A stretch of DNA of 64,000 bases from Magallana gigas (GCF_963853765.1 NC_088861.1:19034001-19098000); one strand, 5' to 3'. Positions 1 through 63,127 are shown, numbered from the stretch's first letter. Notes: generated from the sequence alone by a model not told the origin. Numbers and translations: made by a program.

Positions 1-621
1 ACTGACAATCGAGGCGAAATGGGCAGAATATAAAACAGGGCAAATATTTCCCAGTATATATACATCATATACACAGTCATTACACTTTTCTTTTCATTTT
101 AATTAACAGCAAATCTTTGGGTAATACCACATCAATGCGAGTCCAATTACATGTACCGTACTAATAATCCCTAGAGCTTGCAATGAAATTTACCTTCTAA
201 ATTTTTTTAAATCAACTTACAGATAAATCCAGATTTAGAAAAGACATTTACAAACAATTACCCCATTTGCGAGTGAATCAAGAAAGTTAGGAACTATTTT
301 TTAAAAAATTCCAAGAAATCCGGATCATGGAGATAGATTTGGTTCTCCCCAAGAAAATGTTTGAATTCTTTCATCTTGTCCTTAACCCACTTATTGCCCT
401 AAACTCATAGAAAAAATTGATATCAGTACAAGTCATGAATATTGTACATATTGTCATAAAGGGAGATATAAGGCCAAGAAAGACAACTCTGGTTGACATT
501 CCTCAGTTCAATACTCAGTTATCTCCTCTTGGAGATTATTATCAATTACAGCTGTGGGTGAAGGAGGCTGCATTGCAAAGATAAAAATAGCAGCTTCTCT
601 TCTCTCTCCGTAAGAAACAAA

Positions 622-3015
622 ATGGTGAGGTAAGTATTGTCTTCTATACTTTTCTGCCCTTTGATTCTGAATGAGAAACTTAAGATCCTGAAATTTGACA
701 ATACAGAGAATTTCCCAAAAACTCACTATATGAAATATTGGCTGTTTGTTTATAAACATGTTGTTTCAAAATATTATACTACAAGAAATTAGTGTAAGTG
801 GGTCAAAAACCAGGCAAATTTTAATAGGGGATAGAGAGAGAGGGGTGAGTGAGAGAGAACAAGAGATGGAGAGACATTAAAGTGAAAAGAGTTGTTCCCC
901 TTTGACTGTGCTCATTTTCACACTTGCTTGGGAAATAGCTCCCTTAAGTCATTCCTTCAGCTTCAAATCTATTAGAGTCTTCCTTTTTCCATTGCAGACA
1001 TTGTCAAGAACCATTCCATGCTGTCTTCTGTATTCTAATATACTTAGATACTTTCAAAAAGCAGTATGTTGAATCATTTATATTTGTGGGTGCCAATTTT
1101 AATTTTTGTGGATTCTGTTGTGGGTTTTTTGCTTTTTCGTGGATATGTAATTTTGTGGATGCCTCGGTTTTCAGTTTCAGAAAGAAAGATAACTCCTTCT
1201 TAATTTGTTTTCCTTGAGGATTTAAATTTATGGGGGAGGGCTACCCACGAATACCAAGAAAATTGAACCATCGCGAATTCTAATGATTTCACAGTAAATT
1301 GCTTTATTAGAGACCAAAACATTCAAAAAAAAAAATTGGTGTATACCAAAACAATCACAGTGAAGACATCACAACACTCATCACTCTTTATCTTGCATCA
1401 GCACTTAGATCAATTATAGTCTTAATCATTTTGAATGAACTACATATGTCTAATAAAGTGTACAGGTATTTACCTCAAATATAGAATAACATATGTCACA
1501 TACTGAGACCCTTTAAAATAAAACAATTATAAACACATAATTGTACCAGTCTTTGGAAACATCCTATTTTTTACTTTATTTACTACTTAGTTCATGATGG
1601 TCTTTATGAATTCAAACAATTCTCCTTGAAATTCACTAGTCCACAAAGTATGAATTTGAAGGAAAAAAAACCTTATATGACCTTGTCATCCTACTTGAAA
1701 TGCCAATTGTTTACTTGTTTTACTCAAAATTTTTGCCAATCAACAAGCTATTTACTGTTAACTTTTTGCAACGATTGCAATTATGTTCTTTTCAATTTTG
1801 TCTCCTTGTAGCATTCTGGATTCAGTGAATAACAACAACCCACGATTCCTGAGAGTCCTGTTGGCTGTTCCACAGTCCATCAATAAACGAGAACTGGAGG
1901 CGGCCTTCCTTCAGAGCTCAAAACTAGGTCATCCGGAGTGTATCCAGTGCATTCTGGATACTGGGATAGACACTGAAATTCAGGACACCAATGGGAAAAC
2001 CCCTCTATTTATAGCTGTAGAATATGACAAGCCAGCTTTGGTGGAAATTCTTTTGGAATCCATGTGCAATGTTAATGTACGAGGTCCCGGCCAATCCACA
2101 CCAGTTCATCTGGCAGCAAAACTTTTCCACAATGAGTGTCTTCAACTTCTTGTGTCGCACAGAGCTAAGCTTAATTGCTGCGATTCCTGTGGGAATACCC
2201 CATTGATCATCGCCACGAAATACGGAAACTACGAAGGAATAAGAATTCTTTTGAAGGCGGGATGTGATGTGAATGTTCAGAATAAAGAAGGTTGTACTGC
2301 ATTACATTATGCCAGTCATAAGGCTCAAGGCGTGAACCTCCTGTTGGCCGCAGGGGCAAATCCGAACGTCAGAGATCGGGACAATATAACTCCACTAATA
2401 ATGGCTGCAAGCGAAGGATTCGACGAAGTCGTCAAGGCGCTGGTGAAAGCTAAATGTGATGTCAATGTGCAAAACAACTCTGCAAGAAAAACGGCACTTC
2501 ACATTCTTGCATGGAAAGGCCATTCTGACTGCATCAATGACCTGATTCTCGGAGGAGCAGACGTCAACATTTACGACAAGTTTCACCACACCCCTCTGTG
2601 GTGTGCAGTCAAACAAAAACGACTCGAAGTTGTGAAACTCCTCTTAAGAGCCAACGCTCTTGTGGACACATTTCAGTGCTTACCCACAATTCCCTCTGAG
2701 GCTTGCCCAGTCCGTCTGGCTTTGTCTGAGGGAATGATAAACATCATAAAGCTATTTGTTCTGACAGGATTTGACAAGGGACATTTACGTGCGCGACTGC
2801 AAGAAACAGAACTGAGAGAGAAGATCGGCAAGCATTCGGACATTGAGCAGTGGCTGCTTCATGCAGAGGGGGTGCTGACCTTGAAACAGCTCAGTCGCCA
2901 GTGGATACGGCACCACCTGGGCCTGGCTTTCTACCACCACCTCCATCTACTGCCCATACCCCCCGCCATGAGGGACTTTATTTCAATGAAGGAGCTCGAT
3001 GAAGAGCTACACTAA
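622..3015 (+). CDS. Ankyrin repeat and SOCS box-containing (ASB-like) protein, ~403 aa, 2 coding exons (622-629, 1812-3015)
   Basis: ORF 1783-3015 has ~8 ankyrin repeats (GKTPLFIA, GNTPLIIA, GCTALHYA, RKTALHILA) and a C-terminal SOCS box (LTLKQLSRQWIR...LPIPPAMRDFI). Upstream ATGGTGAG|GTAAGT (donor 630) joins in phase 2 to the acceptor ccttgtag|C at 1812, giving MVSILDS. AATAAA near 3192. Confidence 0.88.
1067..1294. mobile_element. MITE-like non-autonomous DNA transposon (TA-flanked)
   Basis: Imperfect terminal inverted repeats (TGTTGAATCATT ... AATGATTTCACAG) flanked by TA. Similar architecture to 38973-39179. Confidence 0.5.
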
Positions 3016-4757: not shown

Positions 4758-5614
4758 GGTAAGGCTTCTCAAAGCCTTTTCCTATACAAAACTATGGATA
4801 ACAGAAATTTATAAGCCATGATATTTTTTGTCTTTAACTAGAAAATAACATTTTCGTTAAAAAAAAAATCAACATGAAAATTGCAGCTCATATCGCTTTA
4901 AGGAAAGAACAATTTGAAACATGAAACTTGTGAAGGCTTTCAGTAATGTTATATACTTTATTATATTTATATGTAGGCTATATTTCGATCCTGATCTGTC
5001 AATATTATTGTAACATACATAGATCTGTGTAAAATTGAAAAATGTAAAATTTAATTGTATTTTGGGCAGATGATCTTGGAATTAATCAGTAAAACTTGAT
5101 CTCATAACTTATCAACTTGATTCTCAAATATCAGGATGATAAAATCTATTTTAAAAGAACTTCGAAACAAACAAAAACTTTCTTGCGTTTTTAATAATCG
5201 TTTTTTTTTTTTCTTTGTTTATTTAGTTGTTGGTGTTGTCTGTTTGTAGCGTTGTGAACAAAGATATTCTCAAATCTGTCTAATCACTAGATAAAATTAA
5301 AATCTTATTAATTGATTAAGACATATCACCAGAAGCACATTTGTCACCAACTAATTATCAAACATCATAAATTAGATACGTCTTCTAAGTATTGCTATCG
5401 TTAACTGACCAAAAAGTGCCCGAGGTAATTATCTTCGACAGTTAATTGGATTAATTGTTTTAAAAAGGGTGTTAACATGTCGCGTCCTCTTACCAGCGGC
5501 AGGTAGCGGTTTCACACCTGTATACTTGCCAAAACAAATTCGTTTAATTAGGATTAATTGCACATCTGTAAAAATCATCAAATTACCCGAGAAATACTTA
5601 CCTTCCCAGCAGGG

Positions 5615-5712
5615 TATATAGCACGGGACTGGATTTGAAATTGTCATACTACTTCCCGAGTTTCTTCTTGTCAACACATGTGCAAGCCGAAGCCGATAAA
5701 ATACGTTTTTTG
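5615..5712 (+). promoter_or_regulatory. Candidate TATA/Inr core promoter and short non-coding first exon upstream of the hairpin cluster
   Basis: TATATA at 5615; TCA(+1)TAC with A at 5646, 31 nt downstream; donor TG|GTGAGT at 5713. Confidence 0.4.
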
Positions 5713-6276
5713 GTGAGTTTTCTTTTTATATATATATGTTTTTATTTATTCAAAATTCAGATAGGTGAAAATTATTATCCAAAATGACCAATCCCTCTTT
5801 ATTTTAAGTTTCTAAATTTAAATGTTTTTTTTTTATTTTTTTTTATGAATTTCATTGCATGGTTCTTTTTGGTTCGAAAGAATTCCCTTTTTATTTAAAT
5901 AACTTTAAAGTTTCTTATGTTACATTAATTTTAGATATTTTTTTTTTATTTTAAAAATAATTTCAAATTCAAAATTCAGTAAATAAATCTAATGATGACT
6001 CCCTAATAGTTGAGTGACACACGTCTGTGTATATACTATCCAAACTCTGCAATTGTCTCTCTTTACTCGGTAGCAATTAACTTCTTCAGCAATGACCTGT
6101 GAGTGAATTGGTATGTTTATTCTGCGCGGATGTCAATTCGAGTACTCGTCCCTGACAGCTAAATGATTGACACCTGTACACAATATATAACAGCTATATT
6201 GTCATTCGATATTTCAGCACAATACCCGGTTTCGTCACAGCAAGATGTGAATATATAAGTATTTTTGTGTTTTTAT

Positions 6277-9200
6277 TTTGGCACAGAATTTGTGCTACTT
6301 TGAATTGACAGGTAGCACTTATTTGTGCTAAGATTAAAGCGCAGAACTTGCATGCATTGAGAATTCTTAGTAAATGATGTCTATTTGCTTCATAGCAAAT
6401 GTTGGACCTACTTCCCTAGGACCTACTATGTGCTGGTTTTTACTGATTTTACTAGCACTATATAGTCTGTGCTGGGATAGGGGGTCAATTTTTTCAATAG
6501 TCTGAAGAATTTGAATTCTTCGATTCAGCATTTTGGGGTGTATTATGATATTTTGATGTGCAGAACCTGGAAATTCCTATGTTTTGTAACACATGGATTT
6601 TAAGAACTTAAGGATCCCTAGCACATACTGTGTGCTTATGTGTTATCGGACATTAGCACTAGCCTGTGCTGGTAATCCTAGAAAATTGTGACGACGTAGA
6701 ATAAGGACGAGTGAAGCACGACCTCGCTGTCTACAGGTAAGACTATTTTATTTTTAGTAATATGAATTGTGATTTGAGGAATATGGGACTGCCATTTCCC
6801 AGTTCTTGCTATGTGCTCATGTGCTACTTTCATAAGCACTAGCCTGTGCTGGGAAAAACCAGGTCCTGATGACAACTTGTAAGATCAACTTTTATTTCTT
6901 TGTAGTGTTGATATCAATCGTGTGTTCATCTTGAAGTATGAGGCTCAAGATTTCCCGGTACATTTTTTGTGCTCATTTGCTAAATTAATAAGCACTAGCC
7001 TGTGCTGGGAAGTTTGATCCTTTAAACGATCTGTTGATTTATATGATATTCAGTCAATACTTATTCGAGAAGTAAGGACTATGATTTCCTGGTACCTGCT
7101 GTGTGCTCATGTGCTAAATTCATAAGCACTAGCCTGTGCTGGGAAAACAGGTCCTAGCGACAACTACTAATACATGATATAAATGTTATTACTGCAACGT
7201 TTTAAATTTCCTGGTACATTTTTTGTGCTCGTGTGCTAAATTCATAAGCACTAGACTGTGCTGGGAAATTTGATCCTACATTTTGATTTTTCATGTTTTC
7301 ATAATATTTAATTAGACTGATATATATATATATATTTGACAGCTTTTATGGAGAGAATTAAGACTTTGATTCCTCGGTACCTGTTATGTGCTCATGTGTT
7401 ACATTCATAAGCACTAGCCTGTGCTGAGAAATCCGACGATATAAAAGACTATACATTTGGGACATCAGATTTTCTGATAGTTAGCATGTGCTGATATGAT
7501 AACCCCAACAGCATTATGTTTAACTCACATGACGGTTTTCTTTTTTCATTTTACACGCTGAATATGTTTTGATTTCGGTTTCCCGGTACTTCCTGTGTGC
7601 TCATGTGCTACATCTATAAGCACTAGCCTGTGCTGGGAAATCAGATCTTACTTGCGACTTATTGCTTTTATTTTACCTTTATTCCCTTTATGCATAATAT
7701 TAGAAGTTTGAGTTTTAAGGTTTCCCGGTACTTTCTGTGTGCTCATGTGCTACATCCATAAGCACTAGCCTGTGCTGGGAAATCAGATTCTTCTTTACGA
7801 CATTTACGCTTCAGTTTTCTGGGTACAGATGATATGTTAGTATTTATCACGACTATTTTGTACTTTTTAATATGTCTGAGGATTTGAGACCCTATACTTT
7901 GTGCTTCTAGACGTCTAGACGTCCGTCACTGAGTAAAGGTTTGTAACATAAGTGTCAATCTATTATAATGTACAATGGAATATTCGTAATCCAAAGGCAA
8001 ATGTTTTCTTTTACGGTTCTGTTTGCATTTATCTAACATTAATTGATTTATTTCAGTAAGTTTACAACATCTCCTTGCACTTGTTGTGTGCTGGTTATTA
8101 ATTCATCACTAGCACTAGCCTGTGCTAGGAGAGGAATTCAAGTCATCGCAAAGGATGCTTTCTTACCACTGTGACAAAAATACAACTTCTCTAGTGCTTA
8201 TAGGTTTTGGTTGCCCGGTACCTGCTGTGTGCTCATGTGCTACTTTCATAAGCACTAGCCTGTGCTGGGAAATCAGAGCCTTCTTATGATAGCTGTATTC
8301 ATATTAGTTTGTTATAGACTTTATAGGTTCGAGGTATGTGTAATTTATCGTTGGGTATCATTTTGTGCTATTTGATATGAGGATTCAGATTCCCTGGTAC
8401 CTGCTTTGTGCTTATAAGTCATTAATATGAGCACTAGCCTGTGCTGGTAAACCCCTCCTCTTCGCACTTCATCAGTCATTTTGACCGCACAAATGATGCC
8501 TTATTCATTTCTTAAAAGTTATGATTTTGGTCTCACTAGTTTGGTCTCACTAGTTTAAATGATACGTCATAATATTCCACATGATTAATGATTAAAAATA
8601 ATACTGTTACGGTCTATTTACGAAAAAATAACCGTACATCAAAGTGCATTGGCCTTCTTTCTTTTCTTTTTCTGCTTTCAACGTCCCCCTGCACTTGCTG
8701 TGTGCTGGTTTACAACTTCGCACTAGCACTAGCCTGTGCTGGGAGAGGAATCCACAAGTCATCGAATAGACGTTATCTGAAGAAACCCAGCAAAATCATG
8801 TAAATATTGTTTAAGATTTTACATGCTTGGGAAAATTGTTGGTTGAACATCGCAACCACAGGGTAAATCAAGACTTGTAATTTCCTGGTACTTGCTATGT
8901 GCTGATGTGCTACATTCATTAGCACTAGCCTGTGCTTGGAGACAAAGGTCTAAAAATCTTCATGTTTTTTGTTTCATTTGTGAGTTTTTCGGTATACTGG
9001 CAGAGTTACGCTTTATCCAACCGTATGGTAAACTGTACGATTAAAAACGTTTTCTTACAGTTTGGAGTTTTGTCGTTTCGGACGTCAAAAAAGCCCACTC
9101 TTTCTCCGATGATTAGGTTTCGGTTTCTCAGTACCTGCCACGTGCTCATGTGCTACATTCATAAGCACTAGCCTGTGCTGGGAAATCCGAGCCTATCTGA

Positions 9201-10911
9201 TACATATTCACGAAGTCTGAGGGCTCACGTTACAAACCCATTGTACAGGAAGTGAGATGGTTTCTCCAACAACTGTTAACCTTACCTTGCACTTGCTATG
9301 TGCTGGTTATCAAACTGCATTAGCACTAGCCTGTGCTTGGAAAGGAGTTGACTTTTCAACGAATCGTCACCTGATTCCTTTTTTGTCTTCACAAGTAACC
9401 CTATTCAACCTGTCAATTGTATACCTTACCTGGCACTTGCTATGTGCTGGTTTTAGTACACAGCACTAGCACTAGCCTGTGCTTGGAAAGGAGTTGACTT
9501 TTTCAACGATAATTGTCGTTTGAGTTTTTTTTTTTTTTTAGTTTTGAGAGAGTTCAATGTATGACAGTTTTTAGTTGGAATTTCGCCGTTAGATATATTA
9601 AAACAGATCCATTTTATATGAGGATTCAGGTTCCCCGATACCCGCTTTGTGCTTATAAGTCATTAACATGAGCACTAGCCTGTGCTGGGAAATCAGAGCC
9701 TTCTTACGACATTTTTCCTACATAAGTTCAAACTATCTTTCAATATATAGGTTTCAGTCTCCCAGGCCTGCATGTTAGATTCTTGTGTAAGTTTTTGAGC
9801 TGTTAATTACGAGGAATCGGGTTCCCTGGTACCTGCTTTGTGCTTATCAGTCACTAACATGAGCACTAGCCTGTGCTGGGAAATCCCTTCTCTTAGCACC
9901 ACATTCGATTTGATAAAAACAGAACTATACGTAAAATTTGTTTCTACTTATTTTTTTAATCAAGAATTTATCATGCTAACAAAGTAATTTTTACTTATTG
10001 CTTAACCACTTGACTTCAATTAATTGTTTAGCATATTTCATTGACTATTTTAAATTCGTTTCCTATTTTATTTGGTATGCTATATCGTATATCTCTAACA
10101 TTAGTTGGTTGTGTTCAGTGAGTTGACAACGCGTCCCCTTGCAAATTGCTGTGTGCTGGTTCACCACAAGCTTGTGCTGGAAGAGTAGACTCTGATACTG
10201 ACATCTTCTATGGCACTGTTTTTTCTCATATTAGAAGCCACATTATTTTTTCTATCATGTGACAACTTTGCAGTAATCAATTTTAATTCTTAAAAGGTTT
10301 TTTGGTAAAGCTTGCTTGAAGGTTTTATTGACTCAACAAAAAAATTCGGAACTGTGGTTTCCCGGTACCTGCTGTGTGCTCATGTGCTGAATTCATAAGC
10401 ACTAGCCTGTGCTGGGACAGTTTAAGTCCGATAACCAACTACAGCCTTTTGATCTGATCCTTCAGGGTTAGAAAAAGGGCTTATATTAATGTATTTTTTC
10501 TATTTGGGGATTCAGGTATAGAAAAAAATATCGTGTGCTAGAAGAGAGAACCAGAAATGGTTATTTGGTTTCCCGGTACCTGCTGTGTGCTCATTTGCTA
10601 AATTCATAAGCACTAGCGCTCATTTGCTAAATTCATAAGCACTAGCCTGTGCTGGGACATCTTGAAACCCAAAACTCGACTTCAGTATCAATACAATCTA
10701 TATCCATAGAATTTGGTACCTCGTTTTTTCCCTCCGTAACAGCTGAATGCTGTGTTATCACGCGCCATATTTACGAACCGAAAATTTACTTGTACCTAAA
10801 ACGTACCTTAATTAATCACCTGTACCTGTAACCATAGCGTACCTTACCTTGCACTCGCTGTGTGCTGGTTTGTAGTTTATAGCACTAGCACTAGCCTGTG
10901 CTTGGAAAGGA
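6277..10911 (+). ncRNA. Putative polycistronic microRNA cluster: 24 related ~60-nt hairpins of one family
   Basis: Approximate hairpin positions: 6277-6333, 6413-6477, 6612-6678, 6795-6856, 6951-7011, 7085-7146, 7207-7268, 7369-7431, 7579-7640, 7721-7782, 8070-8132, 8211-8272, 8390-8451, 8684-8748, 8881-8941, 9124-9185, 9280-9345, 9424-9491, 9631-9692, 9822-9883, 10134-10185 (deleted), 10358-10417, 10569-10657 (internal duplication), 10841-10911. Consensus TTTCCCGGTACCTGCTGTGTGCTCAT-GTGCTACATTC-ATAAGCACTAGCCTGTGCTGGGAAA folds into an imperfect stem. The 3' arm core AGCACTAGCCTGTGCT is exact in 20 copies. G:U pairs work only on the + strand. Confidence 0.75.
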
Positions 10912-62991: not shown

Positions 62992-63127
62992 NNNNNNNNN
63001 NNNNNNNNNNNNNNNNNNNNNNNNNNNNNNNNNNNNNNNNNNNNNNNNNNNNNNNNNNNNNNNNNNNNNNNNNNNNNNNNNNNNNNNNNNNNNNNNNNNN
63101 NNNNNNNNNNNNNNNNNNNNNNNNNNN
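62992..63127. other. Assembly gap (N run)
   Basis: Run of N. Confidence 0.99.

Follow-up and report, generated by a model that had tools for sequence, protein, structure and literature searches.

We analysed a 64,000-nucleotide stretch of the genome of the oyster Magallana gigas (hereafter the window; C9:19,034,001-19,098,000) and found that positions 6270-10912 very probably form a plus-strand polycistronic cluster of 22 intact, paralogous canonical microRNA (miRNA) precursors accompanied by two damaged copies. A family whose guides carry the seed AGCACUA or AGCACUU occupies four loci, of which this is one, and the cluster belongs with the early-zygotic tandem single-seed miRNA clusters. An earlier reading made from the sequence alone had taken this array for a plus-strand polycistron of Drosha and Dicer substrates, all of one family and with a 3p guide. 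That proposal is supported by covariation in the stem, by a positioned CNNC motif and by selective conservation of the 3p arm, as well as by six hairpins for which reads from each arm have been published.

Structure and conservation of the hairpin array

The 16-mer AGCACTAGCCTGTGCT, which represents the core of the 3' arm, was found in the window 20 times exactly and once with one mismatch, on the plus strand only and between 6655 and 10902, against a chance expectation of 0.01; the 20 exact cores agree with the number first reported. A covariance model trained on an alignment of the 22 window copies returned 22 full-length plus-strand matches over the 64-kb window, which scored 53-87 bits and spanned 6270-10912, together with a partial match at 10582-10617 and a weak match at 10130-10188. 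These account for the 24 copies of one unit that had been proposed: 22 intact hairpins of one family, a copy in which 29 nt are duplicated internally (the partial match) and a broken one (the weak match; Table 1). The model found no family match in the rest of the window outside 6270-10912.

When the 20 intact core-bearing copies were folded as 80-nt segments, predicted stabilities ranged from -22.6 to -32.8 kcal/mol, and the plus-strand fold was more stable than the minus-strand fold in 18 of them. A minus-strand reading of the array was rejected on this ground and because the covariance model scored only 15-30 bits on the minus strand versus 53-87 on the plus strand. In the invariant core AGCAC-UAGCCU-GUGCU, present in each 3p core between 6655 and 10902, the two ends form a 5-bp inverted repeat. 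The 5p arm also looks like the 3p arm. These features explain the weak minus-strand matches.

The consensus stem contains 22 pairs and corresponds to the single imperfect stem per copy described from the sequence. Across the 22 copies, 93.4% of cells were paired in this register, compared to 28-43% when the 3' partners were slid by one to three columns. Compensatory double changes were present in 8 of the 22 pairs, and the observed covariation score was reached by none of 500 shuffles. Most double changes affect pairs that are not part of the mature duplex core, namely those of the basal stem, between columns 3-6 and 73-76, and the apical pair 29:47. G:U pairs are frequent at columns 11:68, 13:66 and 10:69. 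Since such pairs become A-C mismatches on the opposite strand, they favour the plus strand, as argued earlier from the sequence.

Conservation is strongly uneven along the unit. Mean pairwise identity on the alignment was 0.74 for the 5p arm, 0.51 for the loop and 0.89 for the 3p arm, and a profile anchored on the core reached 0.99 across the first ten core positions. With copies anchored in the same way, flanks past ~50 nt had an identity of 0.26-0.31, which is the random level for their composition and indicates that the duplications are old. The drift of loops, 5' arms and spacers noted from the sequence is therefore real. A CNNC motif starts 15-19 nt past the 3p end in 15 of 21 copies, as opposed to 2-4 of 21 at eleven control offsets, and it occurs in otherwise unconserved flank sequence. 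Auyeung et al. reportedly found in 2013 that CNNC enhances Microprocessor cropping in bilaterians. When the array was compared with the definition of a canonical animal miRNA used by MirGeneDB and Xu et al. 2014, 22 copies were found to form a ~60-nt imperfect hairpin with at least 16 arm-to-arm paired positions, and the CNNC was found in the context expected for Microprocessor (~16-18 nt past the 3p cut). The hairpin is under selection as RNA, and its 3' arm is the constrained product.

The palindromic core, AGCAC-N6-GTGCT, also admits a reading at the level of DNA, in which a dimeric factor would bind the repeated cores and the capacity to fold into hairpins would be incidental. Its perfect 5-bp inverted repeat is in keeping with this reading, and no other element of the unit is as conserved. 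However, pairing extends far beyond the core, the basal stem shows compensatory changes, conservation is strand-asymmetric with G:U pairs, the CNNC sits at a fixed RNA-processing offset, and processed reads exist. We consider binding sites of this kind to be an exceedingly improbable explanation of the array.

Table 1. Coordinates of the hairpin copies, a candidate promoter and the other loci of the family. Positions without a chromosome label refer to the window; bits are covariance-model scores and folds are in kcal/mol. Counterparts among published hairpins are from PMC4138081 (Table S7 for m0338, m0341, m0342 and m0345; the novel-miRNA tables for m0347).
Feature	Location	Strand	Bits	Fold	Remarks
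Possible core promoter	6185-6216	+			TATATAA at 6185-6191, initiator-like TCATTC at 6211-6216; ~55 nt upstream of hairpin 1
Hairpin 1	6270-6339	+	56.9	-36.7	Most diverged; 5p UUUGGCACAGAAUUUGUGCUAC (MIR-96-type seed), 3p GUAGCACUUAUUUGUGCUAAGA
Hairpin 2	6408-6483	+	53.0	-34.1	Diverged; 4-nt insertion in 3p arm; counterpart of m0338 (scaffold392:613542)
Hairpin 3	6610-6680	+	68.7	-32.2	3p UAGCACUAGCCUGUGCUGGUAA
Hairpin 4	6791-6860	+	73.4	-30.0	3p AAGCACUAGCCUGUGCUGGGAA
Hairpin 5	6947-7016	+	76.5	-27.2	3p as hairpin 4
Hairpin 6	7081-7150	+	85.9		3p as hairpin 4; copy used for full alignment to Capitella confident-8a
Hairpin 7	7203-7272	+	80.5		C-to-A substitution in the 16-nt core, seen in no other copy
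Hairpin 8	7366-7435	+	83.8		3p end GCUGAGAA
Hairpin 9	7575-7644	+	81.2
Hairpin 10	7717-7786	+	84.2
Hairpin 11	8066-8136	+	71.7		U-type; 3p UAGCACUAGCCUGUGCUAGGAG, 5p CCUUGCAC...
Hairpin 12	8207-8276	+	86.6		5p CCCGGUACCUGCUGUGUGC, equal to published m0348_5p read
Hairpin 13	8386-8455	+	72.8		G-type (3p GAGCAC...); counterpart of m0341
Hairpin 14	8680-8750	+	74.7		U-type
Hairpin 15	8877-8946	+	77.9		Published m0342
Hairpin 16	9120-9189	+	74.5
Hairpin 17	9278-9347	+	76.1		U-type
Hairpin 18	9422-9493	+	76.8		U-type; counterpart of m0345
Hairpin 19	9627-9696	+	75.1		G-type
Hairpin 20	9818-9887	+	76.5		G-type; published m0347, accepted novel oyster miRNA
Copy 21	10130-10188	+	16	-15.2	Degenerate; loop and proximal 3' arm deleted; fold lacks the family stem
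Hairpin 22	10354-10423	+	76.2		Published m0348; 3p AAGCACUAGCCUGUGCUGGGAC(A)
Hairpin 23	10567-10660	+		-36.2 (10555-10672)	Lower stem intact, top enlarged and branched
Hairpin 24	10840-10912	+	74.1		U-type; last copy
C8 cluster	C8:20,305,218-20,307,223				At least 7 hairpins including published m0214 and m0215; 4.8 Mb from large array
Orphan fragment of 743-bp unit	C8:20,324,465-20,324,535				Two hairpins; ~17 kb past the C8:20.3 Mb cluster
C3 cluster20	C3:41,646,8xx-41,647,4xx	-	25-49		m0314, m0316, m0317; guides [U/A]AGCACUUA..
Large C8 array	C8:~25,116,000 to ~25,397,000 (~280 kb)	+			~375 units of 743 bp, three hairpins each

Small RNA reads and developmental profile

Part of the cluster was already on record. 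Xu et al. (2014, PLoS One, PMC4138081) reported on 21 Crassostrea gigas small-RNA libraries, and their supplementary tables list six plus-strand hairpins on scaffold392:613,542-617,624, namely m0338, m0341, m0342, m0345, m0347 and m0348. These are collinear with window hairpins 2, 13, 15, 18, 20 and 22 and differ from them by a few bases; for m0347 (scaffold392:617010-617087) and hairpin 20, a single-base difference was counted by eye. The earlier impression that the family was unrecorded was therefore mistaken, as Xu et al. accepted m0347 as one of 19 novel oyster miRNAs and listed the other five as potential.

Reads in the published m0348 stack are consistent with precise processing. A start at AAGCAC was seen in 191 of 200 3p reads, with a modal length of 22-23 nt, and a start at CCCGGUAC in 54 of 56 5p reads. 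The 20-26-nt reads with a homogeneous 5' end expected from both arms of a miRNA precursor are thus present in the published m0348 data, which were taken as reported rather than mapped anew. The guide is AAGCACUAGCCUGUGCUGGGAC(A), or a U- or G-initial variant of it in other copies, and its seed is AGCACUA. The sequence-only reading had placed the start of the guide at UAAGCAC, giving the seed AAGCACU; the dominant reads begin 1 nt downstream of that. It had also anticipated ~22-nt reads with a homogeneous 5' end and 2-nt overhangs, of which the first was found; as to the second, the authors passed m0347 on the overhang criterion and flagged m0341 and m0348 as failing it. When we placed the dominant m0348 reads on the fold by eye, the 22-mer 3p and 23-mer 5p products had 2-nt overhangs.

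The libraries follow development from egg, blastula, two trochophore samples, D-larva, umbo, two pediveliger samples, spat and juvenile to eight adult organs. Every published member had 0 reads in the egg and was sequenced in blastula, trochophore and D-larva. Later stages and adult organs gave essentially no reads, the exception being 2-3 umbo reads in two 5p rows (2 for m0341/m0347_5p). Zygotic timing, as had been suggested from the architecture, is supported by these counts, which agree with the absence from the egg and the onset at zygotic genome activation expected of an early-zygotic high-copy miRNA cluster. The published 5p reads are specific to this locus: CCCGGTACCTGCTGTGTGC has three sites in the genome, CCTGGTACCTGCTTTGTGCTTAT two and CCTGGTACTTGCTATGTGCT one, all inside the window cluster. 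These sites belong to the 19-mer CCCGGUACCUGCUGUGUGC from the 5p arm of hairpin 12 (three), to the 5p read CCUGGUACCUGCUUUGUGCUUAU (two, in hairpins 13 and 20) and to the 5p read CCUGGUACUUGCUAUGUGCU (one, in hairpin 15). Such 5p reads can have come only from the cluster, and so transcription and processing in the early embryo take place at the window locus itself.

Our preferred interpretation would have the cluster transcribed zygotically from about the blastula stage, as the published reads show, probably as one RNA polymerase II primary transcript that may start near 6213, downstream of the TATATAA at 6185. Hairpins of ~60-70 nt would be cropped by Microprocessor, aided by the CNNC 15-19 nt past the 3p end, and the resulting precursors would be cut, presumably by Dicer, to the 22-23-nt duplex to which the read stacks point. 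The 3p product [A/U/G]AGCACUAGCCUGUGCU[G/U]GGA[A/G/C], with seed AGCACUA, is the constrained strand; loaded in Argonaute, it would guide this protein to UAGUGCU sites in mRNAs and cause their repression.

Several points weigh against this interpretation. Five of the six published hairpins (m0338, m0341, m0342, m0345 and m0348) were classed by Xu et al. only as potential, owing to few reads or imperfect 2-nt overhangs. Published counts are small, from tens to ~200 reads per arm over the 21 libraries. The 3p reads are common to several loci, with m0214, m0215 and m0348 reporting identical counts, and so 3p counts are not assignable to the window cluster. No indexed public RNA run was found to hold the cluster stretch, and in four raw 2026 RNA runs (three single-cell and one bulk, stage unknown) depth was near zero over 6373-11147, a result that is uninformative rather than negative.

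The high dosage that had been envisaged for the cluster is not apparent from counts of tens to hundreds of reads, though repeat-mapping reads were discarded in that study. The m0214 and m0347 arms reached ~110 reads per million or less in the rows seen after this removal. Xu et al. took out annotated-repeat reads before prediction (PMC4138081), and we infer that such filtering would penalise a multi-copy family in their counts.

The low counts, the failure of five of six hairpins to satisfy the original criteria and the decay of two copies (10130-10188 and 10567-10660) would suit hairpins that are neutral and transient, that is, miRNA-like by-products of local tandem duplication that happen to be cropped and diced at a low level. 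Yet of the 21 core-bearing copies, 20 have the 16-nt 3p core without any change, although substitutions have saturated the spacers. Many changes in the 5p arm allow wobble pairing or are compensated, and the flanks, otherwise unconserved, keep a CNNC in position. The same 3p is also kept at three other loci, and there is a likely annelid homologue, both described below. We therefore regard neutrality as improbable and favour a cluster of selected miRNA precursors.

Other loci of the family and the chromosome 8 satellite

A whole-genome search with the covariance model, supplemented by pattern searches, placed the family at four loci: the window cluster, a cluster at C8:20.3 Mb, a locus on C3 and a large array on C8. 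The 20-mer AGCACTAGCCTGTGCTKGGA has 376 forward sites and 1 reverse site genome-wide. By subtraction, with the first 100 sites listed individually, 16 of these are in the window, 8 near C8:20.3 Mb and ~352 in C8:25.1-25.4 Mb. The confinement of 376 forward sites and 1 reverse site to a few tandem loci indicates that the unit is not a dispersed element.

The large C8 array was sampled in alternate 10-kb blocks, and unit counts rest on pattern and candidate tallies; on this basis it comprises about 375 units and about 1,100 hairpins. Each 10 kb sampled from 25,120,001 to 25,390,000 contained 33-42 core-like 3' arms, exclusively on the plus strand, and no core-like 3' arm was found in the C8 blocks 25,100,001-25,110,000 and 25,400,001-25,410,000. 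The unit is 743 bp, occasionally 702 bp, and its three family hairpins fold at -38.3, -34.6 and -41.0 kcal/mol, with the 3p arms UAGCACUAGCCUGUGCUGGGAG, AAGCACUAGCCCGUGCUGGGAA and UAGCACUAGCCUGUGCUGAGAU. A CNNC follows all three at a similar offset to that in the window, judged by eye. Compared to the modal unit, units carry a mean of 6 differences in 743 positions, are 97-99.9% identical and show a gradient of divergence along the array. A genome-wide search with the unit spacer gave 379 first-look candidates, and all of those scored lie inside the array. When the window cluster was compared to the 743-bp unit only the hairpins matched, and no common promoter or spacer was found; by blastn, the 3p arm of hairpin 14, UAGCACUAGCCUGUGCUGGGAG, is identical to that of hairpin A of the unit. 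Tandem repetition of one seed family, as expected of an early-zygotic high-copy cluster, is thus present both in the window (24 copies) and at C8 (~375 x 3). Arm sequences specific to the satellite were absent from the Xu et al. supplements (PMC4138081).

The C8 array can probably be equated with a satellite already described. CgiSat22 (Tunjic-Cvitanic et al. 2021, PMC8268682) has a 743-bp monomer with 53.3% A+T, makes up 0.04% of the genome and occupies a single locus on chr8/LG4. The C8 array has the same unit length, A+T content (53.3%), abundance and chromosome, the two being equated by these descriptors and not by consensus sequence. In that work, CgiSat22 is treated as a satellite with LTR/Gypsy similarity, with no mention of miRNAs, and older assemblies contained only 31-45 of its monomers (PMC8268682).

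The family members on C3, published as cluster20 (m0314, m0316 and m0317), are more distant. They resemble the window family in hairpin architecture and in their blastula-to-D-larva profile in the published tables used here, and the model derived from the window detects them. In contrast to the window family, their seed is AGCACUU, the 3' half of the guide reads ..UUAC[A/U]GAUGCUGGG.., and reads are 10 to 100 times higher, the highest published counts of the seed family. Also unlike the window cluster, cluster20 is intronic and antisense to its host gene. The 3p of hairpin 1 (UAGCACUUAU..) carries the C3-type seed AGCACUU and not AGCACUA.

The satellite raises the alternative that the unit is an inverted repeat, located at the end or in the interior of a mobile element or satellite, and that the small RNAs are silencing siRNAs or piRNAs. 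That the largest locus is a 743-bp satellite annotated as LTR/Gypsy-like (PMC8268682) and that the 16-nt core is a 5-bp inverted repeat, AGCAC N6 GTGCT, are both in keeping with such an origin. Against it, the unit occurs at four loci only, each tandem and in one orientation, as the counts for the 20-mer show. The window and the satellite have hairpins but not spacers in common, and the spacer of the satellite occurs in that array only. The published reads used here are 22-23 nt long with fixed 5' ends and come from both arms; they are not phased and are not 1U-biased 26-31-mers. A dispersed transposable element or the terminus of a miniature inverted-repeat transposable element is likewise at odds with three tandem loci on two chromosomes by count plus the diverged C3 locus. 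The sequence-only reading had named the terminus of a dispersed transposable element family as a way in which it could be wrong, and the four tandem loci with 376 forward sites and 1 reverse site speak clearly against it. We consider an origin of the small RNAs in silencing of a mobile element or satellite to be very improbable and maintain that the family consists of miRNA precursors.

A probable annelid relative

Khanal et al. (2022, PMC8915122) described a tandem miRNA cluster on CAPTEscaffold_488 of Capitella teleta, which the authors themselves likened to miR-430. Its miRNAs were not detected in gravid females and were abundant from post-zygotic to larval stages (PMC8915122). As in the oyster, the hairpins are in tandem, and the 3p products begin UAAGCAC[C/U]... 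in the summary table of that study (PMC8915122). One member, confident-8a, has the 5p CCUGGUACUCUGACUGCUUGUG and the 3p UAAGCACUAAGAGUACUGGAAG (PMC8915122). It has in common with the oyster hairpins the first 8 nt of the 5p (CCUGGUAC), CAUAAGCACUA and a CUGG.AA end, and 45 of 59 positions are the same as in hairpin 6. Scored with a profile built from the oyster copies, confident-8a reached 12.0 bits, while 500 shuffles scored 4.7 bits or less; as it was picked for comparison after a 7-mer search, this statistic is indicative only. The dominant 5' end in Capitella lies 1 nt upstream of that in the oyster, which gives the seed AAGCACU. Most of the other Capitella members (UAAGCACC...), including the most abundant, confident-6b, are too diverged to be detected by the oyster profile.

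On the strength of the sequence comparison, confident-8a is probably homologous to the oyster hairpins, since it shows extra positional matches and has its genomic and developmental context in common with them. The relationship is noted neither in PMC8915122 nor in the parts of PMC4138081 used here. Xu et al. placed the family in the 'Oyster' phylostratum and called the novel miRNAs oyster-specific (PMC4138081). The lineage-specific character that had also been attributed to the window cluster is made doubtful by this likely homologue, which resides in an early-embryo tandem cluster of its own.

Relation to named microRNA families

Rfam was searched at permissive thresholds over 5500-11500, where no family reached its gathering score. 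The only notable match was that of hairpin 1 to mir-96 (RF00669), with 34.4 bits and an E value of 1.8e-4 against a gathering score of 65; the other copies gave no mir-96 match at E up to 10. Membership of MIR-96 was rejected for all copies but hairpin 1, which alone matches, below threshold; the other copies carry CUGGUAC, CCGGUAC or CUUGCAC in place of UUGGCAC or AUGGCAC. The miR-430/miR-427/miR-302 seed family was rejected because the seed is AGCACUA (AGCACUU at C3) and not AAGUGCU, and there is no Rfam match to mir-430 or mir-302 at E up to 10. MIR-29 was rejected as well: its guide UAGCACCA..., with seed AGCACCA, differs at position 7, the rest is unrelated, and there is no Rfam mir-29 match.

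A looser tie to MIR-96, compatible with a cluster of canonical precursors, would make the family a diverged offshoot of MIR-96 (miR-96/182/183/263) whose dominant arm switched from 5p to 3p. The 5p of hairpin 1, UUUGGCAC..., and its Rfam match suggest this, as does the start of the 5p arms at [C/U]CUGG[U/C]AC, near the MIR-96-type seed UUGGCAC. Oyster m0315, m0556 and m0558 (5p [C/U]UUGGCAC...) have the same blastula-to-D-larva profile in the published rows used, and m0315 is located inside the related cluster20. In Capitella, a hairpin assigned to Mir-96-P3 by the authors has the 3p AAGCACUGCUUUGUGCC... (PMC8915122). However, the Rfam score of hairpin 1 is far under the gathering score, the remaining copies have no mir-96 match, the 3p arms of canonical oyster miR-183 and miR-96b are unrelated, and the resemblance consists of short strings only. 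Judged by these sequence comparisons, descent from MIR-96 is a possibility that we view as rather doubtful.

A close parallel in organisation is zebrafish miR-430, for which PMC7417628 and bioRxiv 10.1101/2021.08.09.455629 were drawn on. Like miR-430 and Xenopus miR-427, the window cluster is tandem and multi-copy, has one seed family and a 3p guide, is absent from the egg and sets in at the blastula. The C8 array repeats a three-hairpin unit hundreds of times, comparable to the miR-430a/c/b triplet. In contrast, the sequences are unrelated, and the oyster seed AGCACUA/AGCACUU is the reverse complement of the AAGUGCU-type seed, not a match to it. The oyster family also differs from miR-430 in its low abundance in published data, and a role in clearance is only putative in the oyster.

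Full-text literature searches for the mature sequence found no relevant paper. It is also absent from the supplementary data of Rosani et al. 2020, where miRNAs are named as in MirGeneDB. MirGeneDB 2.0 holds 151 C. gigas precursors (PMC7488030), far too few to include the C8 array.

Copy-level and flanking features

The duplication in hairpin 23 consists of two tandem copies of the 29-nt sequence GCTCATTTGCTAAATTCATAAGCACTAGC at 10589-10646, covering the loop and proximal 3' arm, and looks like replication slippage caught inside one precursor. Upstream of hairpin 1, the TATA and initiator-like elements at 6185-6216 are a possible core promoter of the primary transcript. A GC-richer stretch between hairpins 3 and 4 (6690-6742) ends in ACAG/GTAAGA, which matches a splice donor well, and the primary transcript may be spliced.

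Pile-ups of reads in the four raw RNA runs were limited to two places, a poly-T tract (5800-5990) and a dispersed repeat (11148-11500). The pile-up at 11148-11500 was present in all four runs on both strands, with many variants and loose ends. It points to a dispersed repeat that is expressed and that follows closely on the cluster without belonging to it. An intact 410-aa open reading frame (ORF) at 1783-3015 on the plus strand encodes an ankyrin-repeat and SOCS-box protein (Ank_2, E 1.6e-61; SOCS_box, E 1.2e-7). The cluster begins 3.2 kb downstream of it in the same orientation. On the minus strand, two long ORFs (938 and 506 aa) at 19850-24268 have no Pfam match at E 0.001 and may represent a mobile element or an orphan gene. 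A run of 136 N at 62992-63127 is an assembly gap or masked stretch.

Significance for early oyster development

The window cluster is partly known, in that six of its hairpins appear in Xu et al. 2014. That work, in the parts used here, reports 6 of the 24 copies, does not bring the array and the other loci together under a single family and draws no link to the maternal-to-zygotic transition (PMC4138081). In the literature searched, we found no description of the full extent of the cluster, its selection signature, the family map, CgiSat22 as a miRNA array or the annelid relative.

To our knowledge, the clearance of maternal mRNA in spiralian embryos (molluscs and annelids) is largely unknown. 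Fish have miR-430, frogs miR-427 and flies the miR-309 cluster, known miRNA solutions each of which seems to be of separate origin. By analogy with these, a role of the oyster cluster in clearing maternal mRNAs would fit its timing and architecture and is plausible, and we put it forward tentatively. It is also conceivable, as a speculation that we would not yet back, that the AGCACU-seed family is the spiralian counterpart of miR-430: ancient in molluscs and annelids, carried in arrays, expressed in the first zygotic wave and clearing maternal mRNAs with UAGUGCU or AAGUGCU sites. The satellite would then be a miRNA factory hidden from small-RNA studies by repeat filtering and collapsed assemblies, and each 743-bp unit might have its own promoter, which would nucleate early transcription bodies.

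The family is a concrete candidate for maternal clearance in the oyster, with a defined seed, onset at the blastula, four mapped loci and cluster-specific 5p probes. In the literature searched, two links appear to be new, namely that CgiSat22 consists of miRNA hairpin triplets and that an annelid early-embryo cluster contains a probable homologue. If both are true, the family is old and array-borne, and repeat masking in small-RNA pipelines would hide a major source of embryonic miRNAs.

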